Below are positions 17,708-64,000 of a stretch of DNA of 64,000 bases, piece after piece. The stretch is from Octopus bimaculoides (taxonomy: Eukaryota), in contig NC_068984.1 of NCBI RefSeq assembly GCF_001194135.2, positions 16,003,389 through 16,067,388 of the forward strand. Direction: 5' to 3'. Under the pieces are notes generated by a model. That model saw nothing but the letters and a program-made list of their open reading frames with translations, was not told the DNA's origin and searched no databases. Made by a program: the position numbers and the translations under genes. Numbering within the stretch: the stretch's first letter is position 1; every line of letters starts with the position of its first letter.

Positions 17708-17905
17708 TCATTGCTGTTCATTATCACCAGAGTTATTTAAGTCAATGAGCTGGTCTTCTTGAAAATTTAAATCCTTTTCAAAAGAATAATAGCTTTGGTT
17801 ACTATTAGTTCGTTTAAATAGCATTTTCTTCATTTTCGATCCTGATAATACCTGCTTGCGGTGAGTTATCTTTTCCAAGAGAGCAACACTTTCTGTGAGG
17901 AGTTG
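17708..17905 (-). CDS. FN3-Trx gene terminal exon (acceptor 17905 or 17913)
   Basis: [65 protein letters not shown]; AATAAA about 85 nt downstream (17615-17625). Confidence 0.7.
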   Translation of the reverse strand, partial: QLLTESVALLEKITHRKQVLSGSKMKKMLFKRTNSNQSYYSFEKDLNFQEDQLIDLNNSGDNEQQ

Positions 17906-20900
17906 CTGAATAACTGCAAAGAAAAGAGACACAACTTTAATTAATTGTAAAAAGAGAATGGAGATAAAAAAAAATGTTTGTCTTTTTCTTATTCTTTACT
18001 CTTTTTCTTTTTTTCTGTCTTCTTCCATCTCAAAAAGTGAATGCAAGAGGTGATTGGATGCAGCTGTTTGGAAGCTGACAATTTAGCATGGCTGCCTAGA
18101 CATTCAAGCTGTTTTGGTAACAATACTTTCTGACACTGGAGGGAGGCAAACTGGCACTCTTGGTTATAAGAGTGAGGGTTCCAATTGATTAAATCAATGG
18201 AACAGCCTGCTCATGAAATTAACATGCAAGTGGTTGAATACACCATAGCTACATGTACCCTTAAAGTAGTTCTCAAGGAGATTCAGCATGAGACAGAATG
18301 TGACAAGACTGGCCCTTTGAATTACAGGCACAACTCACTTTTGCCACGTCAAAAATGGTAGAGGAGTAGGGGCTGAAACAGGATGTGATTCTTCCTGATG
18401 ATGTCTTTAGTCCCTGGATCCTATAAAGAAGTGGTTGAGGTAGCGAACCACGAAATGTGGTTGGAATTTCTTCTGAATAAATAAGCTTTACATTTGATAG
18501 AATAACCTGAATGCTAAGGTGTTAAATCGTACAGAAAACAGACGTATAAGTCAAGTAAAGAGTGACAGAACATACATTTGTATCTCAGATTGTGAAATTT
18601 TGATTTGACTATAACTGAAAAATAAAATATGGTTTCAGATCTATTAAACTTGATCTTTTGTGGTTCTGATGAATAAATGAAAAAAGAGAAATCAGAAGAA
18701 ACGGGACATACAGTCTATATCACTGTCTTGAGAATATTCCATTTCGCAATGAATGCAGTTCTTTCTGTTACTTGAGTTCACCTGATGCAGTGCATGAAGC
18801 AGGAAGGATGAAAACAACTTGTAATTCGGTGCACAAAACCTACCATGCCATAGAATGAAACCTGGAAAGGAAGACAAAAAATTCTAATTATGTAAATTTT
18901 CATTGTAAAAGAGAAAGAAATATTAGTGTGAACACTTGGCAGTAAAACTCCTCCTCCTCCTCCTCCGCCTTCCATCCCTCCCTCCTCCTCNNNNNNNNNN
19001 NNNNNNNNNNNNNNNNNNNNNNNNNNNNNNNNNNNNNNNNNNNNNNNNNNNNNNNNNNNNNNNNNNNNNNNNNNNNNNNNNNNNNNNNNNNNNNNNNNNN
19101 NNNNNNNNNNNNNNNNNNNNNNNNNGTTTGTGATCTCAGGTTGGCTATGGAGGTAGCAAAGGTTGTTTCAAGGTGAAAGTGGATCAGGAGGTGTGTCAGC
19201 CCTGGAAGAGTGTGTGATGCCAGGGGTAGTGCTAACTGGACACAAGATGGAACTTCATCAACTTTGGTTGCACAGAGAACCGGAAATGATTGACAGTGAC
19301 TCTCATTTACAACCCTCACACAATGTCAAGACAAGGAAACACATGCACACACACACAATGGGCTTCTTTCAGTTTCTATCAAATTTTAAAATGTCCGTAC
19401 CCATATTATCAGTCAAAAGAATACTTGGCACGCCTTCAATTCCAAGATATTGTCTAAGATCTTTTGTTTCTGTGCATTCATCATCTGGATGTTTGTTTCC
19501 TGCAAAACAATGAAACAAAAATGATTTTAAAAAGACAACAAAAAGGTTATTTTTATGAAAGAGTAAAAGAGAAAAAGTATATTTTAATGCACAATTGGTG
19601 AAGTTAAGTCATTGTTTGTTTTGATAGAAAATATTTTCAATATACCCCGTAAAAAAGTATCCTTGCTGGCCCTACATAAAAAGCACCCAATGCATTTTAT
19701 AAAGTGGTTGGTGTTAGGAAGGGCATCCAGCCATAGAAACTGTGTCAAAACAGACAACTGGATCTTGGTGCAGCTCTCTGAGTTACCAGCTCCTGTCAAA
19801 TCATCTAACCTATGCCAGCATGGAAAATGGATGCTAAATGATGATGATGATGATGACTTTTAGGTTTATAGATGACTTATAATTTCTATTGGTTTCTTGA
19901 GGTCATTACTGAAAAATTAATTTTCATCTAATACATCAAGGGATAGCTGAACCTCCTTTAAGCTATATTCAACCATATCAGTTTATAAAAGATTAATGAA
20001 TTTCAAGTTCTCACGATTGATGAGTGATGTGGATATGACAGAAATAGTAAAGATTCAGACTAAATGCAAGGTAGTATTTAGATTCATATGGAGGTACTTG
20101 GCTTAGTGGTTAAGGTATTGCACCCATGATCTTAAGATTGTGGTTTTGATTCCTGGAAGGGGCAACGTGTTGTGTTCTTGAGCAAAACACTTCATTTCAT
20201 GTTGCTCAATTCCACTCAACTGGCAAAAGCGAGTTATTTTGTAACAGACTGATGTTCCATCCAAGGGAGACCATCCATGCCACAGAACCTGGGAAAACTG
20301 ACCTTATAAGCCTAAGGCTCGGAAAAGATCATTGATCCTCTTTTTTTTTTATTTAGCTTTATACCTCATTTTAAGGGTGACTAGACTTCTATTTCTAATC
20401 TATCAAGCAAATCTTCATTGCAAATGAACTTTACAAACTCTCCCTTGATTGGATTTTAGTTTGGCTTCAGAATTAAGTAGTTGGCTCTTGTCTGAAATTC
20501 TAAATAGCAATAAGTAGAGAAGTTCTTACCAAGTGTCATGTGAGAAGAATAGTGCTTGATGGCTGGTTCTTTATTCCAGTCATTCTCAAGAGAAGTGAGG
20601 TGAGAAGAATCTCCTGCTTTATACTGGGTATCACAGTTTATACACAGGTAGGAGAACTGATATGAAATTAAGCAGGACATGGAAAAAAAACAAAAAAAAG
20701 GAAGAAGATAAGAAAGCTGGCATTTTCAGTAGAAAAACAAAATGTCTGATTACATTGCAATACACTGTAAACAAATAAACAATACTCTTTTACTTTTTTA
20801 CTTGTTTCAGTCAATTGACTGCGGCCATGCTGGAGCACCGCCTTGAAAAACGATGACTTAGCCAGTATAGGGCACGAACCCACGACATTCGCGTTATCAG

Positions 20901-23900
20901 CACGATATTTTAATAAATTTTAAACTTATTTTTTATTATAAAATAACAAATTTATTGTATACAGTGCTCAGGTGCACTACTACAGCTCATCAGAAAGAGC
21001 AGTCAAAAGTGCATGAACAATACATAGAATAATGCACAGGAAGTGAACAGTGAAGGAGCCATTAAAAAAAAAAGGGCGAGGGAACATCCAGTGTTCTGTT
21101 GGTAAATTTCAGGAAACATGGAAATTTTAAAGGATGTAGTATTATACAACATTTCAAAATAATCAAGCAAGAATGTTTTAATCATTTAATCCAAATAAAT
21201 ACAATGCTTATTTCATTTAAGATTAGTGGTTTGGCAGAATAAAGTTCTGTATTTCTTTTAGTATTTTGTTGTAGATCTTTTATGTTCTGAACATGAATTC
21301 TGCTGAGTTCTTTGCCAGCCATTCTTTTGGGATTGATAAATCAAGTGCCAATCAAATACCAGCTGAGGTTTATATGATTGACTATATCACTTCCTCCAAA
21401 TTTTGACCATGTGCCTAAATGTTTACATATTTGATGCAGTTAGCATAAACAGTCTAAGTTGAAATAATTATGTGGTGAGGAAAAGACATTAGTTTAGTGT
21501 TTAATAATGGTTTCAGATTTTTGGTACAAAACCAGCAATTTTGGCAGAGAGGTAAGTCAATCACATTGAACCCAGTGCTCACCTGGTACTTATTTTATCA
21601 ACCCTGAAAGGATGAAAGGCGAAGTCGATCCCAGCGGAATTTGAACTCAGACTATAAAAGACAGACAAAATGCCACTAAGAATTTTTATCTGGCATGCTT
21701 AATAACTCTGCTGGCTTCCTGCTCTGGCTTAGTGTCTAATATTGGCTTCAAAATTTGGCACAAGGCCAGCAATTTCAGTGGAGGTCTTTTATGTTGACCT
21801 CAGTTCTTATTTTATCAATCCTGAAATGACAAAAAGCAAAATTTGAACTCAGAACATACAAATGGATAAAATGCTGCTAAGAATTTTCCCTGGCATGCTA
21901 CTAATACTGAGGAGGAGGAGCACTCCGTCGGTTACGACGACGAGGGTCCCAGCTGATATGATCGACGGAACAGCCTACTCGTGAAATTAACGTGCAAGTG
22001 ACTGAGCACTCCACAGACACGTGTACCCCTAACGTAGTTCTCAGGGAGATTCAGCGTGACACTGAGTGTGACAAAGCTGGCCCTTTGAAATACAGGTAGT
22101 ACTCATTTTTGCCAGCTGAGTGGACTGGAGCAATGTGAAATAAAGTGTCTTGCTCAAGGACACAACACGCCGCCGGGAATTGAACTCACGACCTTACGAT
22201 CATGAGCCAAATGCCCTAACCACTAAGCCACGTGCGTGGCTACCGATACTAAGCACCACCCTAGCTTAGTGACTAATATTATTACTATAACCCTAACTTA
22301 CCAGATTTGGATGTTCTCGCACAAATGTAACCAAAAAGTTCATAACCTTCTTGCAAGGATGGCACCTGTAAACAGAAAAGTTGCAGCGATTTAATTAACG
22401 TGTCATTAAAGAGAATTTAGAATGAAGATCAGACGTTTAGAATGAGAATATTAATACTCACCATGGTATCCAAAACAAAACAAGTGTTGGACATGTTGCT
22501 CCTTGAATTGGAAACACTGGTTCAAAACTGTTGTTGGTTTGGTTCTTTAACAAGCAATCAGGAAGCTGGAATGATTGTTTCATAACACCGGGGTTTGACA
22601 GTTTCTTGCAGAGTTGTTGTTCCTGGCTTAAAGCATCCACGAATTGGCAGCAACCAACAGTTGGCCATCTACATAAGATATTAAAGAAATAAAAAACAAA
22701 ATATTAGATCATCGTCGTTGTTGTCGTCATCGTTGTCATCATCGTCGTCATCATCATCATTTAACACTTGTCTTCAGTACTGGCATGGGCTGGAGAGTTT
22801 GACAGGAGTTGGTAAGCCAGAAGACTGTACTAAGCTCCATGGTCAGTTTTGGTATGGTTTCTACACCTGGATGCCCTTCTTAATGCCAACCACTTTACAA
22901 AGTAGACAGGAGAACGTCAGTAGGTCGAAGATCAAGGGTACGAATAGACTGTGTTGATAGTCTTGTCTGTGCTGATATAGTAATTATACTGTGATACAGA
23001 GTGGACGTTATAACGATCCAATCTTTTATGGATAATAACACTGTATGACTGGCGGTCATACAGTGCCAGATAGAAACATTCTATCAACGACTTTGTAATA
23101 TAACGATATCTGTCAGAGCGACAACCGTCGTCAAAAGACAGATACAACATTAGCAAAAGACTGCTTTACAACAGTTTGTATGTATGTGGAATGAATTTCT
23201 CTCCCTCTTTCTTTTCCTCTCTCTCTCTCTCTTGCTATCTTTATCTATATGTGTGTAACTCCCCGTCTGTGAATGTGTGTGCATGCATATGTGTGCGTGC
23301 GTGTGATGTGTGTGTGTTTGCTTTCCGCCAGCTTCAGGAAGTACTGTCCCCAAAACAGGTTAAAACCCTTTTGTTACCATATTTCTGTTGAGATGCTCTG
23401 TGTTTCTTTCAATTAATTTTAAATATAACAAAGAATTTAATAAAATAACTTAGTTATCACTAAGCTAGTGTTAGGAACATAAATTGTGACTAAGGTTTGG
23501 TGGAAGATTTTAATTCAGAACTTTTGAAAACAAGATTTTTTTACTCAGAGCCAGAGCCGGTTTCAGCCGGGTTGGTATCGAAAGGGTTAAATGTCCAGTC
23601 AGCCAAGCCAAATTGTCAAGTGTCTGGACAACTGCACCCAATCGTTTCAATCCAAACTAGAAGAGATGATTGCCGTCAGTGGATTCATAGAGGAAAAAAA
23701 TGGCACAGATGTAAGTTATCATGTAGATACTGATAAAAAGAATAGAAAACTCTTAAAATTCATCCTTACTTAGCCTCTTTGATGTGTCCTTTGCAGTAAC
23801 AATAATAGGTGAATGGTAGAAATTGAGCTGTGTCGAGGTGTATGACGTTAGATTCTTGGCTGGAAAGTTCAGTATCTTCATATTGAGCTATCATACTGAT

Positions 23901-25972
23901 AGTATGGCTGGAGTCGTCTACCTTTAACTGAAATGACAAGAGCAAGAATACACTCGCACAAAACATAAATAATAATGATAATAATAAGAACACACGGAGA
24001 ACACAAACCTCCACCAAGGCAACACTGACGTCCTCTCAATGATTAGCCAGAGATAATTTTTAAAATGAGAATATCTGAAATAAACTCGACTGCTCTCATA
24101 AATGAGAATACTAAAAATGAACCCGACTGCTCTCGAAAATTAAGTAAAAAGACCAGAAAAATAATCCAGAATCCTNNNNNNNNNNNNNNNNNNNNNNNNN
24201 NNNNNNNNNNNNNNNNNNNNNNNNNNNNNNNNNNNNNNNNNNNNNNNNNNNNNNNNNNNNNNNNNNNNNNNNNNNNNNNNNNNNNNNNNNNNNNNNNNNN
24301 NNNNNNNNNNNNNNNNNNNNNNNNNNNNNNNNNNNNNNNNNNNNNNNNNNNNNNNNNNNNNNNNNNNNNNNNNNNNNNNNNNNNNNNNNNNNNNNNNNNN
24401 NNNNNNNNNNNNNNNNCGATTACATCGACTCCAGGTGGTGGTGGTGGTGGTGGTGGTTAGATTGAGCAGACTTTTGATCGAAGGCATTTCAGCTGTATCA
24501 ACATTGTCTTTTTAGGGCTCTCTCTATTTCTTGACATGAAGCACACTAATTAAAATAAATCTTATCGATGAACAAGGTACTAGCTAGACTGATAAACTTA
24601 CCATTGTTTTGAAATTCCTGCTAGGTTCAGGAATTAAAGTACCAAAGTTCTGTCCATCAAGTAAAAGTTGGTAACCAGTGACTTGAATATTTGGGTTACA
24701 TGGTGTACATTCCCAGCTGATATCAAGAAGAACTTGACCTGAAATAGATTATATTTTATTTATAGAAATATTGGTCCCATGCAGTGAGTTGGCAGAAACG
24801 CTAGCACGCCAGGCGAAATGCATAGCGGTATTTCGTCTGCCGCTACGTTCTGAGTTCAAATTCTGCCAAGGTCGACTTTGCCTTTCATCCTTTCGGGGTC
24901 GATTAAATAAGTACCAGTTACGCACTGGGGTCGATATAATCGACTTAATCTGTTTGTCTGTCCTTTGTTTGTCTGTCCTTTGTTTGTCTGTCCTTTGTTT
25001 GTCCCCTCTGTGTGTAGCCCCTTGTGGGCAGTAAAGACATTGGTGGAATTTGAACTCAGAATGTAAAGATGGATGAAATGCTGCTAGGCAATTTGCACGG
25101 CATGCTAATGATTCTACCAACTTGCTGCCTTTTCAATAATAATAATATTAATAATAATAATAATAATGATAATATTTTCTACCATAGGTATAAGGCCTGA
25201 AATCTTTAGCGAGGAAAATAGTCGATTACATTAACCCCTGGGTTCAAGTGATACTTATTTCATTGACCCCACAAAGTCGACCTCAGTAGGATTTGAACTC
25301 AATGTAAAAATGCAGCTAAGCATTTTGCCTGGCATGCAAATGATGATGACAATGATGATGATGATTATGGTGGTGGTGATGGTGGTGATGATGATGGTGA
25401 TGTATGCACGCATGTATGTTTGTATGTATGTACTAAAAGCTAAAAGGTTACCTGTGTAATTGGAAAGAGCAATGATATACTGTTCAAGTAAATTCTCCAG
25501 TTTCAAAGAAGTCTTGATGGCCAACACTTCCTGCCAAAGGAAATTGCATCAATATTAATATATAAAACAGTTGTGTATAAAAACATATTAGAACCTATGT
25601 TAATGGAGGAAAAAGTATGGGTGGGGGGAGTTAACTAGAGGTTGGTTGCAGACTGGAAAGATGGAGGGAAGAGGCTGGGACACTTCCTGTGCGTCTCCAG
25701 CATCCTTAGGTTACTGGCTTTGATTGATTCCTGTTGTCAGTGGTTAAGGTCTTTAATCTTTAATCTTTTATCTTTTACTTGTTTTGGTCATTAGATTGTG
25801 GCCATGCTGGTGCACCATCTTAAAGAATTTTTAGTTGAATGAATCAATCCCAGTATGTTTTTTTTTAAAGCCTGGTTCTTGTTATATCGGTTTCTTTTGC
25901 TGAACTGCTAAGTTAGGAGGATGTAAACACACTGGTTGTCAAGCGATGGTGGGGGACAAATGCAGACACAAA

Positions 25973-26016
<44 letters not shown>

Positions 26017-29000
26017 CACACTCATATATGATAGGCTTCTTTCGGTTTCCACCTAGGAAATCGACTTATTGTATACAGTGCTCAGATGTACTACAACTCA
26101 TCAGAAAAAGCAGCCAAAAGTGCATGAATGTTACAGAAAGTAAGCACAGGAAGTGAACAGTGAATGAATCATTTTAAAAGGGGAATGGAGAAAGATCAGG
26201 TGTACTGTTGGCAAATTTCAAGAAGTATGGAAGTTTTGAAGGTTGTAGTGTCCCAACAGCTAACAACTGATGTGGGTAGTTTATTCCATGCTTCAGCAAT
26301 TCTGAGCTTGAAAAAATGTTTCCAAAAGTCAAGGGTGCTGCATTGTTTTTTGATTTTGTAAGCATGTCCACGAGTGTTTGACATATGGAATTCAAAAAGG
26401 TGTTTAAGGTTGTTATCAGAAAAATGGTGGATAATCTTATGGGTGTCTACCAAGTCAGTTGCCACACGGCAGAGTTTTAATGTGTCCATGCCCAGGAGAG
26501 CAAGACGTTCAGAGCATGGTAGATGTCTGACGATGGGTATTTATCTGGTTGAACATTTCAGAACAGTTTCCGGGAGATTGATAGCTGAGCAAGGTAAGGG
26601 TCTAGACTGGCGATGCGAACTCTAAGCATGGACATACCATAGGCATATACAACTTTAAATAGGTATCTGTTGCCCCTGGGTAATAAAATCTGCAATAGAT
26701 TTGGTGTTTTATTCTGGAACAAATGTATTTCTTTCTTTCAAAACATTATGAACATTAGGATTATGCATTATAAATCTAAATTTTAAAAAAATCAATAAAA
26801 TATTAATTAGTTTGAATGTCTGAGATGAGTTGTCATTAATTAAACTATAATTTTATGGACTATTAACCTCATCTACGCTACCATTAAAGATCAATATTTT
26901 CAAAATGTAGTGTAGACATAAATATTGAAAAATCTTATGTCTTTAAATGTAAAGATAACAGTCTGAAAAATAATAATAATAACAATAATAATAATTACAA
27001 CCAACCCAGTTTAAGTTAGACCTGTTCAGTTACAATTGTTAAGTTGATAACATGTTGGCGACTTTGCTGATGAATTGTAAGATTTCATCCCATCATGGGT
27101 GCTGTGATCTGCTATGGATGAGACCCTGTGTTTCTTCTGTTTAGTTTACATTGTAGAAGAGTTGATAAGAATAATGATCTTATTGTATACAGTGCTCAGG
27201 TGTACTACAACTCAATGGAAAATGTAAAAGAGTGACAGAAAGCTGAGTCAAGTAAAGAAAGACAGCAATGAAAGCCAAAAGTACATGCATAGTCCATAGA
27301 TAAAACCTAACTGGCACTGATGGTTATGACGATGAGGGTTCCAGTCAAACCAATCAATGGAACAGCCTGCACATGGAATTAACATGCAAGTGACTGAGTT
27401 GTCCACAGACTCACAAACTTTTAATGTATATCTCAGGGAGATTCAGCCTGACACAGAATGTGACAAGGTTGGCCCTTTGAAATACAGGTACAACTCATTT
27501 TTGCCAGCTGAGTTTACTGAAGCAATGTGAAATAAAGTGTTCTGCTCAAATAAAGTGTCTGCTGGGAATCAAACTCATGGTCTTACCACTGTGAGACAAA
27601 TACCCTAACCACTGCACCACACGATTTCACTGAATAAAAGACAAGATGACATGAAAGTGAACAGTAAAAGAGCCCTAAAGAGGAAAAGGTGCACAGAAGA
27701 GAAACAGAAGTTTTGAAGGATGCTGTCATCTGACAGCCAACAAGTAACCTGAGTAGTTTAGGCCAAACTTTGACTATTCTTAGCTTAGAAAAAAGTGTGT
27801 TTCTGGAAGTCATGGGTGTTATGCTGTATATTGATTTTATAAGTATGTCCATGAGTGATTTGTTATTGCGCAACCATAAAAAAGGCTTTTTTTAATGGTT
27901 TGTTGAACACTGAAGAGGTTTTCATTGAAATAATGATTTCTTTAGCAGCATTGCTCTTATGTAATTGCTACTACAATGACTGACTTGATCAGTCTTTACA
28001 CAAACTGATACAGAAATAATCTGATATTGTTATCATCATTGTCATTGTCGTCGTCACCGTCATCGTCCTCATCATCATCGTCGTCGTTGTCGTCGTCATT
28101 ATTTAACATCTGTCTTCCATGCTGGCATGAATTTGATGGTTTGACCGGATCACACATGCTGCAGGACTGTGTCAAGTTCCAATGTCAGATTTGGCAAGGG
28201 TTTCTACACCTGGGTGCCCTTCCTCCTAATGGTAACCACTTTATAATGTGTACTGGATGCTTTTTATGTGGTACTAGCATGAATGACACTGCCCAGTAAC
28301 TTGCAAGACAAGAAACGAAAATGGAATAGCCGTCTTGATTGAATGGGTGGGGATGTATTGATTCTAGCCCAATTAAAAAAATAAAACCTTTGAATGATTC
28401 CAATACATTTTCATCAGTTAAGAAGTTGGTAAAACTTACTTGACTATTTCTAGAATTAGATTTTCTTGTTGGCGTCAGTGAATTTCGGCTAACCTTCTGC
28501 ATATTGTTAAAACTGCTAATTAATCTGAAACAAATGTAGAAGAGTTTTTTTTTCTTCATTGCAAGGAACAGGTGATTAATTAATTCTTTCATAATTATTG
28601 TGGTATTCACACAAGAATATGAGGCAGCTGGAAGATGTTAGACATCAGTCTCTACAGATAACGAGGAGGATAGTTTTTTCTCGTTTGGTTTGCCAAAGAG
28701 CATATTTCTTTTTTTTTTTTTTGAAGTCATTTATTGTTAATGTTTATTGATAATACTGAATAAAAAGTTTGAAGTATGGTTATTTTCATTTTTATAATTA
28801 CTATCTCCCACTTAATTATTCCTTCAAACAGTTCAGAGATGAACTAATGAGGGAGCTCCTACAAAATCTTATATGGACCCCCAAGGATCCATATAAGATT
28901 TTGTTGTTAACATTTATGAGTAATAAATTGGTTACATGTCTACAATACACAAAATATTTCAACAAATCTTTTTATACAATTCCTAATAATATTTAATGAT

Positions 29001-31454: not shown

Positions 31455-31517
<63 letters not shown>

Positions 31518-31956: not shown

Positions 31957-32015
<59 letters not shown>

Positions 32016-32638: not shown

Positions 32639-32678
<40 letters not shown>

Positions 32679-50279: not shown

Positions 50280-50315
<36 letters not shown>

Positions 50316-51455: not shown

Positions 51456-51522
<67 letters not shown>

Positions 51523-51741: not shown

Positions 51742-51832
<91 letters not shown>

Positions 51833-54800: not shown

Positions 54801-57800
54801 TATTTAACCTCAACAACAGGTACTATGTCTGTGTATGTGTGTGCATGCATGCATGTGTGTGTGTGTGTCTGTGCGTGTGTGTGTGTGTCTGTGTGTGTGT
54901 CTGTGACTGTGTATGTGTTTGTGTGTGTGCATGCATGTGTGTGTGTGTGNNNNNNNNNNNNNNNNNNNNNNNNNNNNNNNNNNNNNNNNNNNNNNNNNNN
55001 NNNNNNNNNNNNNNNNNNNNNNNNNNNNNNNNNNNNNNNNNNNNNNNNNNNNNNNNNNNNNNNNNNNNNNNNNNNNNNNNNNNNNNNNNNNNNNNNNNNN
55101 NNNNNNNNNNNNNNNNNNNNNNNNNNNNNNNNNNNNNNNNNNNNNNNNNNNNNNNNNNNNNNNNNNNNNNNNNNNNNNNNNNNNNNNNNNNNNNNNNNNN
55201 NNNNNNNNNNNNNNNNNNNNNNNNNNNNNNNNNNNNNNNNNNNNNNNNNNNNNNNNNNNNNNNNNNNNNNNNNNNNNNNNNNNNNNNNNNNNNNNNNNNN
55301 NNNNNNNNNNNNNNNNNNNNNNNNNNNNNNNNNNNNNNNNNNNNNNNNNNNNNNNNNNNNNNNNNNNNNNNNNNNNNNNNNNNNNNNNNNNNNNNNNNNN
55401 NNNNNNNNNNNNNNNNNNNNNNNGTGCATGCATGCATGTGTGTGTGTGCATGCATGCACGTGTGTGTGTGTCTGTGAGTGTGTGTGTGTATGTCTGTGAC
55501 TGTGTATGTGTTTGTGTGTGTGCATGCATGCATGTGTGTGTGTATGTGTCTGTGAGTGTGTGTGTGTGTGTCTGTGTGTGTGTCTGTGACTGTGTATGTG
55601 TTTGTGTGTGTGCATATTATTGAAAGGGGATCTTGTTTCCTGCCGTATTTTAAAGGTTACATCTACAAATGACTGATAACAGCCAGCCAGCGTAGACAAT
55701 TACTTCCGACTTGTTTTAGCTTGTAAACAATTTAAATATAAGCAATTTTAAACAACAAACCTGTATTCTCGTTTCTAATCTTCTTCATCGATCTTGCTTC
55801 AACCACAACTGTATAAATGGTGTTTGATTGCAGATTGGTCAGTACAAAATGGTCTTCTGTCAAGTCAATCATGAATAATAGAAATTTAGAGAACAAAGCA
55901 AAGTAACCAAACGATTAGTTAGTATAACATTCAAAACAACTACATTTAATTGGTAACACAAATTCACACTTACACATACATGTGTGCACGAACACATATT
56001 CATGCACAAGCACACATGCACACACATGTGCACAAACACTAATATACATACATACATTAGGTGTATATTGTGAACCAATACTCAAAGTAAACAGTACACA
56101 TTATTGAACTAATTTGCCGACAAATGGCCTTAACACAATAAGACAATATTTAAAGATAGTTTATCAATAATGCAGAGGTATGCACATATATATATATAAT
56201 AAAACGAATGGTTTACACTTGGTAGCTTACTAGAAAAGCACGGTCACTTTCAGAGTGATCGTTAAGTATATAGCTAGATGTGTCAAAACAATTGTTGTGA
56301 TTCGATATAAATTCTCGTATATTTCATCTTCTGTCTTTCATTTGCTATATCATCATCATCATCATCGTTTAACGTCCGCTTTCCATGCTAGCATGGGTTG
56401 GACGATTTGACTGAGAACTGGTGAAACCGGATGGCAACACCAGGCTCCAATCTAAATTTGGCAGAGTTTCTACAGCTGGATGCCCTTCCTAACGCCAACC
56501 ACTCAGAGAGTGTAGTAGGTNNNNNNNNNNNNNNNNNNNNNNNNNNNNNNNNNNNNNNNNNNNNNNNNNNNNNNNNNNNNNNNNNNNNNNNNNNNNNNNN
56601 NNNNNNNNNNNNNNNNNNNNNNNNNNNNNNNNNNNNNNNNNNNNNNNNNNNNNNNNNNNNNNNNNNNNNNNNNNNNNNNNNNNNNNNNNNNNNNNNNNNN
56701 NNNNNNNNNNNNNNNNNNNNNNNNNNNNNNNNNNNNNNNNNNNNNNNNNNNNNNNNNNNNNNNNNNNNNNNNNNNNNNNNNNNNNNNNNNNNNNNNNNNN
56801 NNNNNNNNNNNNNNNNNNNNNNNNNNNNNNNNNNNNNNNNNNNNNNNNNNNNNNNNNNNNNNNNNNNNNNNNNNNNNNATATATATATTTCATATATATA
56901 TATGTGTGTGTTTGTATGTGTGTGTTGTGTATATGTATCATCATCATTGTTTAACGTCCGTTTTCCATGCTGGCATGGGTTGGATGGTTTGACTGAGGTC
57001 TGGAGAGCCAGCGGCTGCACTAGGCTCCAATCTGATCTGGCAATGTTTCTACAGCTGGATGCCCTTCCTAATGCCAACTACTCCGAGAATGTAGTGGGTG
57101 CTTTTTATGTTCCACCAGCACAGGAGCCAGTCAGATGGGCCTGGCATCGATCATGTTTGGATAGTGCTTTTTATGTGTTACAGGCACAGGAGCCAGTCAG
57201 GAGGTTCTGGCATTAGCCATGTTCGGATGGTGCTATTTACATGCCACCAGAACAGGAGCCAGTCAGGAGGACCTGGCATCGACCACGTTTGGATGGTGCT
57301 TTTTACATGCCACTGGAATGGGAGCCAATCAGGGGCCACTGGTATTGGCCACATTCGGATGGTGCCTTTTATATATCACCGGCACAGGGGTCAGTCAGGC
57401 AGTCCTGGTATCATTCACGTACAAATAGTGCTTTTTACATGCCACCGGAATGGGAGCCAGTCAGGGAGCACTGGCTACAGGTACGATTTTGGTTTTATTT
57501 GACTCAACAGGTCTTCTCAAGCATATCATATCACCCGACGGGGTAGATATAGATATATATATTTCATATGTGTGTGTATAGGGTTGGAACAAAACTTCAT
57601 ACTGATTTTCCAGTTGGTGGTGTTTAAACATGTGATTCATTTTTCACAAGACAGAAGCAATGACATATTTTTTGAATGGTTACATTTTAACATGTCTTTC
57701 TATATGATTACTATGTGGATAGTTTATTTCTACTGTTTTTATATTTAAAGTGTAAATGGAGGGATATGAGTTGCTTTTTGTCATTTGGTGCTCTTTAATT

Positions 57801-59739: not shown

Positions 59740-59780
<41 letters not shown>

Positions 59781-61290
59781 CATCATCATCATCAAAATTG
59801 TGATTGAACCAAATTTGATGACTGGCACCTGTGCCAGTGGAGCGCTAAGAGCACTTTTCGAGTGTGATCATTGCCAGAGCAGCTGTCTGGTTTCCATGTC
59901 AGTGGCAGGTAAATAGCACCATTTGAGCGTGATCGTTATCAGCATTGCCTTACTGGCACTTGCGCTGGTGGCACGTGAAAAAACATTTGAGTGAGGTCAT
60001 TGCCTGTGCCGCTAGACTGGCTCCCATATAGGTGGCATATAAAAAACACCATTTTGAGTGTGGCTGTTGCCAGTTCTGCTTGAATGGCCCTCGTGCCAGT
60101 GGCACGTAAAAGCATCCATTACACTCTCGGAGTGGTTGGCATTAGGAAGGGCATCCAGCTGTAGAAACTCTGCCAGATCAGAATGGAGCCTGGTGCAGCC
60201 TTCTGGTTTGCCAGTCCTCAGTCAAATCGTCCAACCCATGCTAGCATGGAAGGCGGACGTTAAACGATGATGATGATGATGATGAAACAACGTGAAAAGA
60301 AAGAGCACTGAAAACACCTTAATGTGAAATAAAGGAAAAAAAAAAAGACAATGTTTATTTACCGTCAGTACAATCTGTGCCGATGCCTTTCTCCGCTTCT
60401 TCTCCAGGCCACCAGGTCAGCTGATACTTCTCTGGCTGGACATAGTGTGCTTTGAGTTCTTCATCTGAGCGTGTAAATTAAAAAGAAAANNNNNNNNNNT
60501 GGTGGTGGTGGTGGTGGTGATGATGATAATAATGATGATGATGATGATGAAACAACGTGAAAAGAAAGAGCACTGAAAACACCTTAATGTGAAATAAAGG
60601 AAAAAAAAAAAGACAATGTTTATTTACCGTCAGTACAATCTGTGCCGATGCCTTTCTCCGCTTCTTCTCCAGGCCACCAGGTCAGCTGATACTTCTCTGG
60701 CTGGACATAGTGTGCTTTGAGTTCTTCATCTGAGCGTGTAAATTAAAAAGAAAAGGAACACCACTATGATGATGAAACTAATTAAACTGAAGGAAGAGTG
60801 TTGTAGTTTGCTGGAAGCATTGTAGTGCAGAAATAGAAAATGAATGAAATGAGAAATAAGGAAAGCTTGTAAAAATGAAGAAAGTTTAAAAAACCTTTAT
60901 ATTCCAGGAGCAAAGGCCTATCTTCAGAAGAATACAGTCAAAGAAATGTGCATTTACATAGGTCCTGCAATTTTTGGATAGTCTGCTGCTTGAGCTAGTA
61001 GCATCTTTATTTCTCATTTCATTCATTATTCTAATTAAATTGATTACTGAATGTTGTAAAATGCAATGTTGAATTATACAAGACTGACATTTTGGGAATC
61101 TCAATCTGTGTCTCTCTGTAACTAGTAATGAATGCTCACAGAACAAACACAGTGACGATAACAGGTTCAATGAAGGCCTTTTCCTCTTCTGGACATGTTT
61201 CCACAGAAGATTGGAAACAACGGTTACTGCAAGAATGATGGTGATGTTTGTTTACACCTATCATGTGGTGTGAAGACACGGAGGTACAAA

Positions 61291-61331
<41 letters not shown>

Positions 61332-63008
61332 ACAGGCTTCTTTCAGTTTCGGTCTACCAAATCCACTTACAAGACATTGGTCAGTCTTCGGCTACAAGAC
61401 ATTTGCCTTAGGTGCCATGCAGTGGGACTGAACCTAAAACCATGTGGTTGGTAAGTAAACTTTACAACTACACAGCCATGTGTGCATCTCTTTGAAGATA
61501 TATCATTATTTATTCTGATCTTCAATGAAATTTCAAGGTTTCAAATAAAGAATAAGGAAAATAATTCCAAACTTACTTTTGTTCCAGACAATAAGAGCCG
61601 AATGTCCAGTAACTTTCTCACACCAAACTTTTGTTGGACACTGGACAAGCCCAATATAATGAAGGTTTAACTTTTGACCAGGTTCACAACAAGAATAATT
61701 AAGATTTTCTGAAATGTCTGCAATAAAATAATGTTATACACATGGTATGTTTTATATATTTTGCTGAAATGAGAAAATAAATAAATGTCAAAAATTTCTT
61801 ATATATTTTGGAATTGACTAATTCTCCATTACTCTTTTACTTGTTTCAGCAATGTGGCTGCAGTCATGCTGCTGGAACTCAAGATTTGGAAATACATTTA
61901 TATATATATTCTGCCAGAGAAAAAGATGCCAAGCTTTATAATATCGGAACAGGGAGCTGACTGGAACTGGGAGCTGACCGGAAGGGGGAGAGGGGCAGAG
62001 GGAGCCACAATTGGGATTTCGTGCCTTTTCGAGCGGGGTCGTTGCAACGCGAAGACGTGCGTGGCGATCGTCCAGATGAGGGAGAGGCAGCTGCTATTTC
62101 TAGCGTTCTTCGGGTCGGGCCAGGCGCGAGGACAGGATACCACAAGACAGGTTCGTGGAGCAGAAGGAAGACGAGGTAAGCTGATTACTTCTAATCACAA
62201 CACCACAGCTCAGTAAAGGTTTAATGATGTTTTCAATTTACTACTGTAACCCACTCTGAATTTAATAGACTACATCCTGTGATTTGGATTAATGGAAGTA
62301 AGCAGAAATGCTGTTGCTAGACAGCTATCAGTCCTAGATATTTAGATTAATATTACAGAAATGGAGAAAAATATTTCAGACTTATGCACATTTGGTAATA
62401 GAGTTGATTAAAGATTGAGCAGAACCTCCATTGAGGTGTGTCAGAAAAGTCAGTTTAGTTCAGTGCTCCGAAACCTTTTTAGACTTGTGGTACACTTATA
62501 TTCTTTTCAAAATTTGACAGCACACTTGAACAAATGATATAACTAAAAGTATAAAGAAAAAATTATATTCAGGTTACGCTGTGGCACACCTAGCATCATC
62601 TTGTGCCACACCAGTGTGTCATGGCACACTGGTTGCAGGGCACTGGTTTAGCTATTTAAGAAGACAAAAGTACATTTATAACTACTTTTGCATTATTTTC
62701 CCCTCGCCTTAAAATTGCTGGTTTTGAATCCTGCAAGGAACCTGCATCTCATTCAGGAGAATGTTGTGATTTTGGTCACTTATATACCATGGAGACCAGG
62801 TAACTGACCTTATGACTTTTAGTGCTCAAGAAGAAAACAAAAACTAGGTGCAGAAGTGGATCTGTGGTAAGAAGTTTGCTTCCCGACCATATGACTCCAG
62901 GTTCAGTCTCACTGTGTGACACCTTGGGCAAGTTTCTTCTACTACAGCCTTGGGCTGACCAAAGCAGTGTGAGTGGATTTGGTAGACGGAAACTGAAAGA
63001 AGCCCATC

Positions 63009-63047
<39 letters not shown>

Positions 63048-64000
63048 TATATATACATGACTGAGACCTTTGGTGATATGCTGTGCTTGAGAAGACCTAT
63101 CAAGCCAAGTGAAATCATAGTCACGGCCGATGCTGGTGTCACGTAAAGAGCACCTGGACCAGAGGCACATGAAGAGTGCATTTCAAGCGTTGGGTCACAC
63201 GGAGTCAAAGTGGCTGAGTTCCTTTTGAGTGTTGGGCCTCACAGAAGCAATGACCAAGACCTTTTGGCATTATGTCATGGCAGATACTGGTGTCATGCAA
63301 ATGGCACCTGTGTTGGTGACACATAAAAGCACCTATTACACTCTCAGAGTGGTTGGCATTAGGAAGGGCATCCAGCCATAGGAAACCATGCCAAATCAGA
63401 CTGGAGTCTGGTGAAGCCTTCCAGCTTACCAGCCCTGGTCAAACTGTCTAACCCATACCAATGTGGACAACAGACGTTAAATGATGATGATGATGATGAT
63501 GATGATATATATATATATATACACATGTATATATGTGTTTTTATATATGTGTGTGTGTATATGTGTGAGTGTGTATGTGTGTGTATGTGTCTTTGTGTCT
63601 GTTTGTCCTCCACCATCACTTGACAATTGGTGTTGGTTTGTTTACATCCCTGTAACTTAGTGGTTCGGCAGAAGAGACTGGCAGAATAAGTACAGGCTTA
63701 AGAGATAAAGTCCTGAGGTCAATTCATTCAACTGCAATTCTTCAAAGCGGTGCTCCAGCATGACCACAGCCTAATGACTGAAACAAGTAAAAAAAGGTAA
63801 AAAAAAAATAAAAAGGTATATAATTAATGGTTGAGAAATTTCTATTCTTACCCTTTTTCTCTTTGTTTATCTTCTCTGAGACCTCTTCATTTACATCCTG
63901 TGTGCTTAAGTCTTCAGTTGGAGGAGGTTTTGTTAAAGCAACCAACTGAAGTGTAATTTCGTCTCCAAGAGTTAGGTCTCTGATTCGTAAGGAATTAATT
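17708..64000 (-). CDS. Large uncharacterised multi-exon gene: at least 11 FN3 repeats plus a C-terminal TlpA-like thioredoxin domain (5' end beyond window)
   Basis: 27 exons join in one open frame with GT-AG junctions and matching phases (4,492 nt, about 1,496 aa). FN3 signatures (W in strand B, Y in strands C and F) recur. The thioredoxin domain reads [21 protein letters not shown]...[25 protein letters not shown]. Confidence 0.9.
18782..18861 (-). CDS. FN3-Trx gene penultimate exon (donor ambiguous: 18782 or 18772)
   Basis: ttccag|..[27 protein letters not shown]|gtgaac; alternative donor aa|gtaaca 10 nt further. Confidence 0.75.
19401..19499 (-). CDS. FN3-Trx gene exon (99 nt, phase 1 to 1) with thioredoxin cis-Pro loop
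   Basis: ttgcag|..[33 protein letters not shown] g|gtacgg. Confidence 0.88.
20530..20656 (-). CDS. FN3-Trx gene exon (127 nt, phase 0 to 1)
   Basis: tatcag|[42 protein letters not shown] g|gtaaga. Confidence 0.85.
20859..20905 (-). pseudogene. tRNA-Ile-derived 3' fragment (positions 27-73)
   Basis: TCGTG-CTGATAA-CGCGA anticodon arm, ATGTC, GTGGG-TTCGTGC-CCTAT T arm, ACTGGCT-A. Close to the invertebrate tRNA-Ile(AAU) 3' half; D arm and 5' acceptor strand are absent. Confidence 0.65.
21909..22236 (-). mobile_element. tRNA-derived SINE family E
   Basis: Head GTGGCTTAGTGGTTAGGGC...GAGTTCAATTCCC then TGTCCTTGAGCAAGACACTT. Copies at 18140-18345, 27310-27620, 34703-35028, 46455-46735. Confidence 0.85.
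22302..22365 (-). CDS. FN3-Trx gene exon (64 nt, phase 2 to 0) carrying the CHPC active-site motif
   Basis: ttacag|G TGC CAT CCT TGC...AAT CTG|gtaagt; (W)[21 protein letters not shown]. Confidence 0.92.
22462..22668 (-). CDS. FN3-Trx gene exon (207 nt, phase 2 to 2), start of thioredoxin-like domain
   Basis: tgtag|..[68 protein letters not shown] tg|gtgagt. Confidence 0.9.
23770..23927 (-). CDS. FN3-Trx gene exon (158 nt, phase 0 to 2)
   Basis: tttcag|[52 protein letters not shown] aa|gtaagg. Confidence 0.88.
24602..24738 (-). CDS. FN3-Trx gene exon (137 nt, phase 1 to 0)
   Basis: tttcag|..[46 protein letters not shown]|gtaagt. Confidence 0.9.
25452..25530 (-). CDS. FN3-Trx gene exon (79 nt, phase 0 to 1)
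   Basis: tggcag|[26 protein letters not shown] g|gtaacc. Confidence 0.8.
26066..26640 (-). mobile_element. CR1-clade LINE 3' end
   Basis: DLVDTHKII...[11 protein letters not shown]...[20 protein letters not shown]...TFK is the CR1 ORF2 C-terminus; its 3' UTR recurs at 20950-21180 and 27178-27300. Confidence 0.85.
28440..28524 (-). CDS. FN3-Trx gene exon (85 nt, phase 2 to 0)
   Basis: tttcag|..[28 protein letters not shown]|gtaagt; needed to restore phase. Confidence 0.8.
29369..29595. mobile_element. piggyBac-like MITE (TTAA-CCC termini)
   Basis: TTAACCCTTTT...AAAAAGGTTAA; related copies at 23360-23590 (inverted), 14575-14760 and 13130-13340. Confidence 0.7.
29930..30084 (-). CDS. FN3-Trx gene exon (155 nt, phase 0 to 2)
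   Basis: tactag|[51 protein letters not shown] aa|gtatgt. Confidence 0.85.
30400..30560 (-). mobile_element. Decayed LINE ORF2 C-terminal fragment
   Basis: [35 protein letters not shown] resembles W.EA...A.DR..WR...LC..G. Confidence 0.5.
31181..31306 (-). CDS. FN3-Trx gene exon (126 nt, phase 0 to 0)
   Basis: tttcag|[42 protein letters not shown]|gtaagt. Confidence 0.88.
32968..33138 (-). CDS. FN3-Trx gene exon (171 nt, phase 0 to 0)
   Basis: gacag|[57 protein letters not shown]|gtaaga. Confidence 0.88.
35203..35383 (-). CDS. FN3-Trx gene exon (181 nt, phase 2 to 0)
   Basis: ttccag|..[46 protein letters not shown]...EYSFQVQ|gtaagc. Confidence 0.92.
35955..36252 (-). mobile_element. tRNA-derived SINE family F (one copy in window)
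   Basis: On minus: GTGGAGGCGCAATGGCCCAGTGGTTAGGG...GTTTCAATTCCC tRNA-like head; GC-richer body. Confidence 0.65.
36713..36891 (-). CDS. FN3-Trx gene exon (179 nt, phase 0 to 2)
   Basis: ttctag|[32 protein letters not shown]...[12 protein letters not shown] ag|gtgagg. Confidence 0.88.
38097..38370 (-). CDS. FN3-Trx gene exon (274 nt, phase 2 to 0)
   Basis: ttttag|..[24 protein letters not shown]...[33 protein letters not shown]|gtaaat. Confidence 0.9.
38825..39120. repeat. Foldback-like inverted repeat (~90-bp arms)
   Basis: 38825-38915 pairs with 39029-39120 (TGTATCTTCTTCA...TTCATCTTCTGC vs GCAGAAGATGAA...TGAAGAAGATGCA); diverged. Confidence 0.75.
39261..40078. mobile_element. Cluster of three family A copies (one -, two +)
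   Basis: Reverse 3' end at 39261-39370; forward copies end in (GAT)n at about 39645 and 40078. Confidence 0.85.
40351..40427 (-). CDS. FN3-Trx gene exon (77 nt, phase 0 to 2)
   Basis: ttgcag|[25 protein letters not shown] ag|gtgagt. Confidence 0.9.
40514..40570. repeat. (ACT)n microsatellite
   Basis: Direct reading. Confidence 0.95.
41303..41416. repeat. (ATC)n microsatellite (expanded family A tail)
   Basis: Direct reading; abuts a family A 3' end. Confidence 0.95.
42046..42241 (-). CDS. FN3-Trx gene exon (196 nt, phase 2 to 0)
   Basis: tgtag|..[10 protein letters not shown]...[38 protein letters not shown]|gtaaga. Confidence 0.9.
43444..43648 (-). CDS. FN3-Trx gene exon (205 nt, phase 1 to 2)
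   Basis: tttcag|..[41 protein letters not shown]...PVNRL aa|gtaagt. Confidence 0.88.
44693..45060 (+). mobile_element. Family A copy with upstream GCGTTGGGCCTCAC / GAGACCTTTGG modules
   Basis: The same upstream modules occur at 4745-5050 and 63058-63300. Confidence 0.75.
45089..45317 (-). mobile_element. tRNA-derived SINE family C with 16-bp target-site duplication
   Basis: GCGGCGAGCTGGCAGAA...GAGTTCAAATTCC...AAAGAAATAAG; CTTCTGCACAGTTTCT at 45073-45088 and 45318-45333. Other copies at 4502-4700, 15925-16140, 21520-21720, 24777-25035, 31834-31945, 52130-52340. Confidence 0.88.
46010..47355 (+). mobile_element. Family B SINE host carrying nested C (46165-46400), E (46455-46735) and A (46750-47098) elements
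   Basis: B head at 46010-46155 resumes after a duplicated AGAAACTGTGT(T/G)GAAGCC; B tail at about 47110-47355. Confidence 0.75.
47522..47636 (-). CDS. FN3-Trx gene exon (115 nt, phase 0 to 1)
   Basis: gacag|[38 protein letters not shown] g|gtttgt. Confidence 0.8.
48297..48572 (-). CDS. FN3-Trx gene exon (276 nt, phase 0 to 0)
   Basis: ttttag|[19 protein letters not shown]...GYQLIINDS...[14 protein letters not shown]...KKWK|gtaagt. Confidence 0.9.
48856..49511 (-). CDS. FN3-Trx gene exon (656 nt, phase 1 to 0)
   Basis: tccag|..GLYLELTPI...EYLFRIFAL...[23 protein letters not shown]...[14 protein letters not shown]...SIPTPK|gtaaga. Confidence 0.92.
49758..50013. mobile_element. hAT-type MITE with 8-bp TSD
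   Basis: CAGTGGTTCTCAACC...GGTTGAGAAACACTG flanked by GGGTAGAT on both sides; degraded relative at 28820-29097 and a right end at about 34035. Confidence 0.88.
50931..51098 (-). CDS. FN3-Trx gene exon (168 nt, phase 1 to 1)
   Basis: tttcag|..[56 protein letters not shown] g|gtatca. Confidence 0.9.
52840..53340 (+). mobile_element. Family A copy nested in a family B SINE
   Basis: B tail at 52455-52670 and B head at 53345-53500 flank it. Confidence 0.8.
53960..54770 (-). pseudogene. Possible decayed copy of an MBT/SLED (SFMBT-like) coding sequence
   Basis: Stop-riddled frame with CNGYELSP (54545-54522), then [18 protein letters not shown] (54316-54284), [12 protein letters not shown] and YQGIV*IL, in the order seen in SFMBT MBT4-SLED; similarity judged by eye only. 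Confidence 0.3.
54825..55615. repeat. Compound (TG)n/(TGCA)n satellite spanning a gap
   Basis: Recurrent GTGTGTCTGTGACTGTGTATGTGTTTGTGTGTGTGCAT higher-order unit. Confidence 0.85.
55761..55856 (-). CDS. FN3-Trx gene exon (96 nt, phase 1 to 1)
   Basis: gacag|..[32 protein letters not shown] g|gtttgt; FN3 strands E-F. Confidence 0.88.
56938..57540 (-). mobile_element. Family A copy with about six tandem 66-bp units
   Basis: TGCTTTTTATGTTCCACCAGCACAGGAGCCAGTCAG... recurs at 57099, 57165, 57231, 57297, 57363 and 57429. Confidence 0.85.
57581..58216 (+). mobile_element. Decayed mariner transposon (left end plus 5' part of transposase)
   Basis: TA|GGGTTGGAACAAAA left end; [40 protein letters not shown]...LVPHNL and MITGDEKWI match mariner HTH, WVPHEL and TGDEKW motifs; stops and frameshifts present. 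Confidence 0.88.
58410..58834 (+). mobile_element. Family A copy
   Basis: Family core with (GAT)n tail. Confidence 0.85.
59815..60285 (+). mobile_element. Family A copy
   Basis: Family core with (GAT)n tail. Confidence 0.85.
60628..60729 (-). CDS. FN3-Trx gene exon (102 nt, phase 1 to 1); identical copy at 60363-60464
   Basis: ctcag|..[33 protein letters not shown] g|gtaaat. Confidence 0.85.
61577..61708 (-). CDS. FN3-Trx gene exon (132 nt, phase 1 to 1)
   Basis: tttcag|..[44 protein letters not shown] a|gtaagt. Confidence 0.88.
61937..62207 (-). mobile_element. Probable solo LTR; related partial copy at 43236-43410
   Basis: Minus strand TGTGGTG...TATTATA; flanks GCTT/GCTC (4-bp TSD, one mismatch); shared core CAGCTGCTATTTCTAGCGTTCTTCGGGTCGGGCCA; CpG-rich. 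Confidence 0.5.
62461..62645. mobile_element. hAT-type MITE with 8-bp TSD
   Basis: CAGTGCTCCGAAACC...GGTTGCAGGGCACTG; flanks GTTTAGTT/GTTTAGCT. Confidence 0.75.
62850..63795 (+). mobile_element. Family B SINE split by a family A insertion (63058-63505) in its central microsatellite
   Basis: B head, (TA)n, A copy with (GAT)n, (TA/TG)n, B tail. Confidence 0.8.
63852..64000 (-). CDS. FN3-Trx gene exon (partial, runs off window)
   Basis: [49 protein letters not shown] g|gtaaga (phase 1). Confidence 0.85.

Follow-up and report, generated by a model that had tools for sequence, protein, structure and literature searches.

Introduction

Several described protein systems resemble parts of the gene that is the subject of this paper. 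The bacterial enzymes TlpA, ResA, CcmG, StoA and Etrx have a thioredoxin (Trx) core to which an N-terminal hairpin and a central α/β insert are added, an FW.xWCxxC motif that starts helix 1 and a G(I/V)P cis-Pro loop; the TlpA/ResA class consists of single-domain, membrane-anchored enzymes that are periplasmic or otherwise extracytoplasmic. In nucleoredoxin, tryparedoxin and NHLRC2 (Pfam Thioredoxin_8), a cytosolic TlpA-like Trx fold with the active site WCPPC is either fused to protein-interaction modules or operates through them. The action of nucleoredoxin is a redox-dependent binding of partners, e.g., Dishevelled (PMC9030443). RIM-binding proteins comprise an SH3 domain, three fibronectin type III (FN3) modules, which are intracellular, and two further SH3 domains. 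AGR2 and ERp44 are small proteins, either lumenal in the endoplasmic reticulum or secreted, which have monothiol Trx folds of the CxxS type; in ERp44, the CxxS holds clients in mixed disulfides and does not cycle. That of AGR2 also forms mixed disulfides with its clients, without cycling (PMC4940162). Here, we describe a gene of Octopus bimaculoides that lies in a 64,000-nucleotide stretch of DNA (RefSeq assembly GCF_001194135.2, contig NC_068984.1, positions 16,003,389 to 16,067,388 of the forward strand; the whole stretch is referred to as the window). It encodes a long array of FN3 modules followed by one Trx-like domain, and is called the FN3-Trx gene in what follows.

The Trx-like domain encoded in the window shares the predicted fold and both motifs with the bacterial enzymes, but it is the C-terminal module of a giant and apparently cytoplasmic animal protein. 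The nucleoredoxin group is comparable in its cytosolic TlpA-like fold and in its association with interaction modules; however, these proteins have no FN3 arrays, no orthology is indicated, and their WCPPC corresponds to WCHPC in the window gene. As in RIM-binding proteins, the FN3 modules are apparently intracellular and have C strands of the type G-Y-x-(V/L)-x-(V/I/L)-(N/D)-G, but the FN3-Trx family has far more of them and has cupredoxin-like and Trx-like domains in addition. This resemblance had been pointed out in an earlier reading of the window (the original prediction); the C strands are indeed of that type, but the likeness is weak: Pfam Ig_RIMBP2 gives 24.9 bits for the window (cut-off 27) and 45–61 bits for orthologues, no single stretch being significant. 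The CxxS layout of AGR2 and ERp44 is like the CL(S/T/A)S of the orthologues and unlike the CxxC of the window copy. FN3 and Trx folds are each ordinary, whereas a giant cytoplasmic FN3 scaffold ending in a TlpA-type redox domain is not described in the literature that we found, and no relevant paper was found on this architecture or on the accessions of the orthologues. The family is unstudied, yet already present in public databases.

The FN3-Trx gene and its orthologues

The FN3-Trx gene lies on the minus strand; the part inside the window extends from position 64000, at the window edge, to 17708. Its spliced model has 27 exons (Table 1), all 27 of which are GT-AG and phase-consistent, and encodes 1,525 amino acids with a single stop codon (TGA, 17710–17708), close to the 27 phase-consistent exons and about 1,496 amino acids originally predicted. 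The model was built from stop-free stretches with splice-site and codon-usage scoring (a simple exon-chaining script), doubtful junctions were checked base by base, and the result was then corrected against orthologues. Residue 1 of the window model aligns with residue 742 of 2,376 in Lingula and with residue 1920 in Bulinus, and the stretch from 64000 to 17708 is roughly the 3′ 40–45% of one very large protein-coding gene.

The FN3 array is recognised by Pfam fn3 (PF00041) with 147.8 bits (threshold 25, E = 1.1e-43), six stretches being individually significant. There are ten complete FN3 modules and one that is 5′-truncated at the window edge, in agreement with the predicted minimum of 11; they align at the B-strand Trp and at the aromatic residues of the C and F strands. 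The AlphaFold model of exon 6 (218 amino acids, aligned with eight relatives) has a mean predicted local distance difference test (pLDDT) score of 84.9 and shows two β-sandwiches, with a short helical insert in one F–G loop. In Foldseek, its top matches in the PDB are the tandem FN3 modules of fibronectin, contactin and PTPRD.

An exhaustive HMMER search with the same 218 amino acids gave 49 matches, the best of which has 54% identity (P0001). The named matches, all annotated as ‘uncharacterized’ or ‘hypothetical’, include relatives from the gastropod Bulinus truncatus (KAH9503746.1, partial), the brachiopod Lingula anatina (LOC106180596, XP_023933288.1, UPI0006988F7C), the hemichordates Ptychodera flava (XP_070557721.1) and Saccoglossus kowalevskii (LOC100370084), the crinoid Anneissia japonica (LOC117115100, XP_033114658.1) and the annelid Dimorphilus gyrociliatus (CAD5112723.1). 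The family extends over at least five invertebrate phyla, in lophotrochozoans and ambulacrarians; there are no vertebrate, arthropod or nematode proteins among the named matches of this search. Conservation of this breadth probably reflects a basic cell-biological role, hidden from the standard model organisms. Five matches (P0012, P0029, P0032, P0040 and P0044) are generic FN3 arrays or repeats and were not counted as orthologues. It had been suggested that no ortholog could be named and that the family might be undescribed: there is no characterised orthologue among the named relatives, all of which are uncharacterised, and no paper on them was found, but orthologues from at least five phyla are present in the databases.

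In tblastn searches, the orthologues match the window exons colinearly between 63999 and 22461, and the alignment continues to the C-terminus of the Trx-like domain. Identity in the FN3 region is highest to Bulinus (43–51%). Besides the colinear FN3 array, the window gene and the orthologous group share the insert (T/D)EEYFDxLP...WLP...TSGxxP, a helical insert ...L(I/L)NxRD(K/R) within the last FN3 module, a linker of the form F.PF..Y.(C)F, a G(C/S)C.Y.D block, the Trx motifs PT..LFW, G.xGVP(T/S) and I.W.GR(F/Y), and a CxxC after the domain. Single RefSeq or UniParc polypeptides of Lingula, Ptychodera, Anneissia and Dimorphilus span both the FN3 array and the Trx-like domain. The Bulinus protein KAH9503746.1 stops inside an FN3 module; however, the remaining exons (the last FN3 modules, the linker and the Trx-like domain) lie in order within 4 kilobases (kb) downstream (L001 40858–44804, JAGDYQ010000069.1). 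Thus, the genome of Bulinus itself allows its gene model to be completed; in it, the intron that separates the last FN3 exon from the first Trx exon has the same position as in the window.

These alignments indicate that, in this family, a single gene encodes both the FN3 array and the Trx-like domain, as had been predicted for the window, whose exons match that layout. It is very improbable that the FN3 and Trx exons come instead from separate transcripts or from two adjacent genes, with the Met of GVMKQSF (exon 22) as the start of the Trx gene. There is an in-frame ATG ahead of the Trx fold, and the frame of exon 21 meets a stop one codon beyond its donor (…KEAK-stop), where an unspliced message would end; but the donor of exon 21 and the acceptor of exon 22 are canonical and phase-compatible, the frame stays open over the 32 codons from this acceptor to the Met, among which the conserved block (W/Y/F)P..G.C.Y.D is found, and both the single chains of four other species and the shared intron of Bulinus argue for one gene. 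In terms of annotation, an FN3 array that looked like an orphan is joined to its true 3′ end.

The Trx-like domain

The C-terminal part of the protein consists of a Cys-rich linker, a Trx-fold domain (about residues 1243–1457 of the window model; LVLFWIPW/CHPC ... GIEGVPS ... FILWHGRF) and a tail, with 15 Cys in the last 300 amino acids. The segment LVLFWIPW closes exon 22 (donor ATG/gtgagt at 22462) and CHPC opens exon 23, so that WCHPC (22463–22353) is split exactly between Trp and Cys by an intron of 96 nucleotides (22461–22366). In Bulinus, the corresponding FWTPWCLSS...ARENNSL is encoded by a single exon (L001 42321–42599) and the active-site intron is absent; exon 23 is homologous to Bulinus CLSSQKIMNNFARFARENNSL. 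The gain or loss of this intron coincides with the most-changed segment. About 85 residues separate the CxxC from the cis-Pro motif GIEGVPS, a spacing shared with the TlpA/ResA-type enzymes of bacteria; G..GVP is invariant across the family. The prediction that both active-site cysteines and the cis-Pro loop are intact was borne out at the level of sequence motifs (WCHPC and GIEGVPS, within exons 22–25).

Pfam Thioredoxin (PF00085) matches the domain with 29.4 bits (cut-off 23.5), over profile positions 15–64 of 103 only, and PDB thioredoxins align to it over β1-α1-β2 only. Thioredoxin_8 covers profile positions 4–90 of 94 but scores 26.7 bits against a cut-off of 27, i.e., borderline and below threshold; weak matches to this profile occur in four of five family members. 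In the AlphaFold model of the Ptychodera Trx-like domain, the core has a pLDDT of 80–92, and there is an N-terminal hairpin and an α/β insert after β2. When this model was compared with known structures in Foldseek, ResA, CcmG, Etrx1/2, TlpA, DipZ-C and Sco led the list (E about 1e-6, TM-score to target 0.7–0.8), and a search of PDB sequences with the family profile placed StoA first. The NCBIfam models for StoA (18.8 bits against 210), TlpA (17.3 against 230) and ResA (13.6 against 170) all scored below cut-off for the window domain. The modelled structure places the Trx-like domain in the TlpA/ResA/CcmG structural type at the level of fold, not among the members of those bacterial families, and alignment to the orthologues suggests the same fold for the domain of the window. 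Of the TlpA/ResA/nucleoredoxin-type layout originally proposed, the fold was upheld (by Foldseek on the model of the orthologue), whereas membership of the families was not, given the NCBIfam scores far below cut-off and the borderline Thioredoxin_8 score.

There is a second CxxC immediately after the last Trx helix: CIHC in the window, HCDNCK in Bulinus (L001 about 44750–44790), GCELCK in Lingula, DCQICK in Ptychodera and GCVHCG in L002 (about 8040–8060). Its conservation exceeds that of the canonical pair in the active site, and it may serve to bind metal or as an alternative redox site.

Layout and location of the whole protein

The colinear orthologues have about 3,000–3,700 residues; full-length members have 3,200–3,700 and begin with MGAGAS or MGTGAS (P0002, P0004, P0018 and P0058). 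Substrates of N-myristoyltransferase have Gly2 and Ser6, and MGxGAS is an N-terminus of the myristoylation type. Pfam finds weak cupredoxin-like or copper-binding matches near the N-terminus of the orthologues, then CHB_HEX_C_1, Fn3_assoc and FN3, and a long acidic low-complexity region follows the N-terminal cupredoxin-like domains. SH3 domains, which had been suggested for the upstream part, gave no Pfam match in the full-length orthologues P0002 and P0004; the cupredoxin-like domains are found there instead. Judged from the full-length orthologues, the layout of the family would be MGxGAS and several cupredoxin-like β-sandwiches, followed by a disordered acidic stretch and some 15 FN3 modules; the C-terminal part would consist of a Cys-rich linker, a single Trx-fold domain and a low-complexity tail.

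These features suggest that the protein is probably intracellular. Long FN3 arrays are mostly extracellular, the TlpA/ResA/CcmG fold class is extracytoplasmic in bacteria, and the domain and its linker are rich in Cys (see above), all of which would suit an extracellular or membrane adhesion-type FN3 protein with a TlpA-like domain acting outside the cytoplasm. Such a protein is, however, highly unlikely. The N-termini of the full-length orthologues have no signal peptide and no transmembrane segment was noticed in these proteins; the window model, as predicted, has no transmembrane segment (its highest 19-residue hydropathy, 1.67, is on a proline-containing strand); and the weak matches are to the intracellular RIMBP2-like Ig/FN3 family.

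Variation of the active site and proposed function

The active-site motif, which follows the conserved PT..LFW strand, was compared in the window gene and in seven other taxa (a further locus, L006, ends upstream of the Trx region and gives no motif). It is WCHPC in the window gene, WCLSS in Bulinus, WCLTS in Lingula, WCLAS in Ptychodera, WCLAA in Anneissia, VCAAS in L002 (a metagenomic eukaryote with tiny introns), NLNPYS in Dimorphilus and NLNSYS in L004 (a Dimorphilus-like, i.e., dinophilid, annelid). The first Cys is present in six of the eight taxa, and the complete two-cysteine site is found in the window gene only, being absent in all seven others. Because the other members have no second Cys, the function conserved in the family is not dithiol chemistry: the originally proposed scaffold that positions a dithiol oxidoreductase does not stand as a family role, but may apply to the window copy. 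As C-L-x-S is common to deuterostome and lophotrochozoan members, it is the parsimonious ancestral state and CxxC is derived. The window gene differs from its orthologues, which have CL(S/T/A)(S/A), VCAAS or no Cys, also in the extra intron that splits CHPC and in the low-complexity loop before the cis-Pro, which is short in the window gene and long in the orthologues. An alignment of five C-terminal sequences has 19 invariant columns, including PT..LFW, G.xGVP and I.W.GR.

On balance, the most probable reading is a modular scaffold inside the cell, possibly membrane-tethered, the terminal Trx-like domain of which is thiol-reactive and, in this species, possibly catalytic. The protein would be a long cytoplasmic scaffold of β-sandwich modules, possibly tethered to a membrane, and the Trx-like domain at its end would engage partner proteins via its exposed first cysteine (Cys1312 of the window model). 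In most lineages, where this Cys is kept as CxxS/A, the layout would favour long-lived mixed disulfides or thiol sensing over turnover; in the lineage of the window, CHPC together with the intact cis-Pro motif would add a resolving Cys (Cys1315), giving a true dithiol-disulfide oxidoreductase at a site fixed by the scaffold.

The main rival explanation takes the Trx-like domain for a binding or structural module without redox activity (a pseudo-redoxin), in which CHPC is incidental in a fast-drifting segment; we consider this a tentative but serious possibility. It would account for the lack of the second Cys in seven other taxa and of both in two, for the structural nature of the best-conserved positions (PT..LFW, GVP and I.W.GR), for the unusual divergence of the N-terminal half of the Trx-like domain in the window gene and for a Thioredoxin_8 score just under the Pfam cut-off. 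On the other hand, the change from CL(S/T/A)S to CHPC takes three adjacent codon changes, which yield exactly the canonical WCxPC beside an intact cis-Pro motif; the first Cys is retained by six of the eight taxa, as would be expected of a role that depends on the thiol; and the exon with CHPC is intact, with canonical splice sites.

Several observations weigh against the thiol-reactive scaffold that we prefer. Two annelid-type members are without any active-site cysteine, so at least one lineage can do without thiol chemistry. In its N-terminal half, the Trx-like domain of the window gene is 30–34% identical to that of other taxa, compared with 44–53% among those taxa, and the FN3 regions of the window gene are only slightly more diverged than between other taxa; such accelerated divergence would fit a change of function or relaxed constraint equally. 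The evidence for the fold is a model of an orthologue domain that is 22–24% identical to that of the window, and the bacterial TlpA/ResA/StoA/thioredoxin models score 13–26 bits against cut-offs of 97–230. The FN3-Trx gene model of this species is predicted from genomic DNA; about 2,000 codons at its 5′ end lie beyond window position 64000, and the N-terminal features are borrowed from orthologues. Finally, locus L004 carries a second large FN3-array gene (16741–17937, minus strand, opposite to the orthologue; 1,255 amino acids), which runs off the locus. Paralogues of the FN3-Trx family exist in at least one lineage, which is a caveat on orthology.

A more far-reaching version of the scaffold reading, which is doubtful, is that the family consists of undescribed giant N-myristoylated cytoplasmic scaffolds with an ancestral monothiol CLxS end module that traps thiols, and that the lineage of the window regained the resolving Cys, turning a trap or sensor into a dithiol reductase. 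If this were true, the regained CHPC would be a natural re-activation of a degenerate redox site. The natural series of CxxC, CxxS/A and no Cys (in dinophilid annelids) offers a comparative test of catalysis versus mixed-disulfide capture versus plain binding.

Exons and assembly

The window is AT-rich (about 38% G+C), with many microsatellites and interspersed repeats and with 13 gaps of N in 64 kb. All 13 gaps are outside exons, in introns of the model (e.g., 18991–19125 in the intron between exons 25 and 26). At all eight junctions with gap-bearing introns, the spliced protein aligns to Lingula, Ptychodera, Anneissia and Bulinus with no residues missing; because the alignment is continuous across all eight, no exon is apparently hidden in any gap. 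A segment of 223 nucleotides occurs twice with 100% identity (60267–60489 and 60532–60754), flanking a gap of 10 N (60490–60499), and includes the whole of exon 3. The duplication is almost certainly an assembly artefact due to an unmerged contig overlap, and exon 3 counts once.

The number of gaps, the exon duplicated at one of them and the introns full of interspersed repeats might suggest a decaying pseudogene or an assembly chimera, in which the architecture would be an artefact of a gappy draft. We give this explanation very little credence, as every one of the 27 exons has an open frame, a consistent phase and GT-AG borders, their order and content agree with orthologues of five phyla, with nothing missing or extra at the gap-bearing introns, and no exon overlaps a repeat family.

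Table 1. Exons of the FN3-Trx gene and repeat elements, in positions of the window
Feature	Position	Strand	Remarks
Exon 1	63852..64000	minus	Runs off window edge; strands E-G of 5′-truncated FN3 and linker; donor AGG/gtaaga; aligns to Lingula P0051 aa 742-767 and Bulinus P0002 aa 1920-1945
Exon 2	61577..61717	minus	Linker and FN3_1 strands A-B; GT-AG, phase 1 to 1; 59-69% identity to orthologues
Exon 3	60628..60729	minus	FN3_1 strands C-C′
Exon 3, second copy	60363..60464	minus	Identical; assembly duplication, left out of gene
Exon 4	55761..55856	minus	FN3_1 strands E-F; matches Bulinus; colinear across gap-bearing introns
Exon 5	50931..51098	minus	FN3_1 strand G and FN3_2 strands A-C; 52-63% identity to orthologues
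Exon 6	48856..49511	minus	656 nucleotides; remainder of FN3_2 with helical F-G-loop insert (DEYFDLLP...WLP) and whole FN3_3
Exon 7	48297..48572	minus	FN3_4 strands A-F
Exon 8	47522..47636	minus	FN3_4 strand G and linker
Exon 9	43444..43648	minus	FN3_5 strands A-E; aligns to Bulinus
Exon 10	42046..42241	minus	FN3_5 strands F-G and FN3_6 strands A-C
Exon 11	40351..40427	minus	FN3_6 strands C′-E
Exon 12	38097..38370	minus	FN3_6 strands F-G, linker, FN3_7 strands A-C
Exon 13	36713..36891	minus	FN3_7 strands C′-G and start of FN3_8
Exon 14	35203..35383	minus	FN3_8 strands B-F; 47-54% identity to orthologues
Exon 15	32968..33138	minus	FN3_8 strand G and FN3_9 strands A-C
Exon 16	31181..31306	minus	FN3_9 strands C′-F
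Exon 17	29930..30084	minus	FN3_9 strand G, FN3_10 strand A, start of conserved helical insert; aligns to orthologue motif GLEERRQIE..C.L(I/L)N(K/R)RDK
Exon 18	28440..28524	minus	Mid part of FN3_10 insert (LISSFNNMQ...); phase 2 to 0; resembles Dimorphilus DKLISVINSS and Lingula DKLLRNLNN
Exon 19	25452..25530	minus	End of FN3_10 insert; aligns to Bulinus IEELLESCFSALDNYTG
Exon 20	24602..24738	minus	FN3_10 strands B-E (VLLDISWE...)
Exon 21	23770..23927	minus	Last FN3 exon; FN3_10 strands F-G and conserved linker, which aligns to Bulinus FKPFTYYCYH and Lingula FRQFTFYCFH; intron position same in Bulinus
Exon 22	22462..22668	minus	Conserved GCCQF segment, then Trx N-terminal hairpin and strand β1; 32-34% identity to orthologues
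Exon 23	22302..22365	minus	Active site CHPC (22364-22353) and helix α1
Exon 24	20530..20656	minus	Trx strand β2 (FSYLCINCD) and α/β insert typical of TlpA-like folds; aligns to thioredoxin β2 and orthologue motif NGWRDD...H
Exon 25	19401..19499	minus	Loop, cis-Pro motif GIEGVPS (GVPS = 19434-19423), strand
Exon 26	18712..18861	minus	Strand FILWHGRF, last Trx helix, second CxxC (CIHC, 18757-18746)
Exon 27	17708..17913	minus	Poorly conserved C-terminal tail and stop TGA; least certain exon, tail without alignment to orthologues
Repeat of about 300 nucleotides	16701-17000		
Repeat of about 300 nucleotides	39349-39648		
Repeat of about 300 nucleotides	39772-40071		
Repeat of about 300 nucleotides	46794-47093		
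Repeat of about 300 nucleotides	52971-53270		
Repeat of about 300 nucleotides	58531-58830		
Repeat of about 300 nucleotides	59979-60278		
Repeat of about 300 nucleotides	465-763		Inverted
Tandem units of 66 nucleotides	7263-7531		
Tandem units of 66 nucleotides	57019-57485		
Inverted repeat of 304 nucleotides	6289-6592 / 6951-7254		97% complementary, spacer of 358 nucleotides
Open frame of 114 codons	26540-26199	minus	In intron between exons 18 and 19

Some alternative splice sites and exons were rejected. For exon 5, the donor at 50895 was discarded in favour of 50931 on the basis of FN3 register and orthologue alignment. A GC donor at 29991 (after ...VNIIG), spliced to exon 20, would give a neat FN3 register, but the conserved helical insert of the orthologues argues otherwise; in the window gene this insert of FN3_10 is encoded by exons 17–19, with normal GT donors. 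The chained exons 59828–59781, 40895–40806, 37424–37222, 37145–36986, 29804–29694, 25020–24915 and 18506–18339 were dropped, having no orthologue counterpart or lying in repeats. A short C-terminus (donor 18782 to acceptor 17905) was discarded for 18712 to 17913, as the part that it skips contains the conserved CxxC. Without splicing at donor 18712, exon 26 would read on for five codons to a stop (…DIDCMSRFF-stop, 18712–18695), giving a possible short C-terminus without exon 27.

Repeats and other elements in the window

An interspersed repeat of about 300 nucleotides has at least ten copies in the window, on both strands and with 60–94% identity, mostly in introns of the FN3-Trx gene (examples are listed in Table 1). 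There are other repeat families, including the tandem units of 66 nucleotides. The open frame of 114 codons in the intron between exons 18 and 19 seems to resemble the C-terminal tail of open reading frame 2 of a retrotransposon without long terminal repeats, and is presumably a dead insertion. Downstream of the FN3-Trx gene, the inverted repeat of 304 nucleotides could be a foldback element or one similar to a miniature inverted-repeat transposable element.

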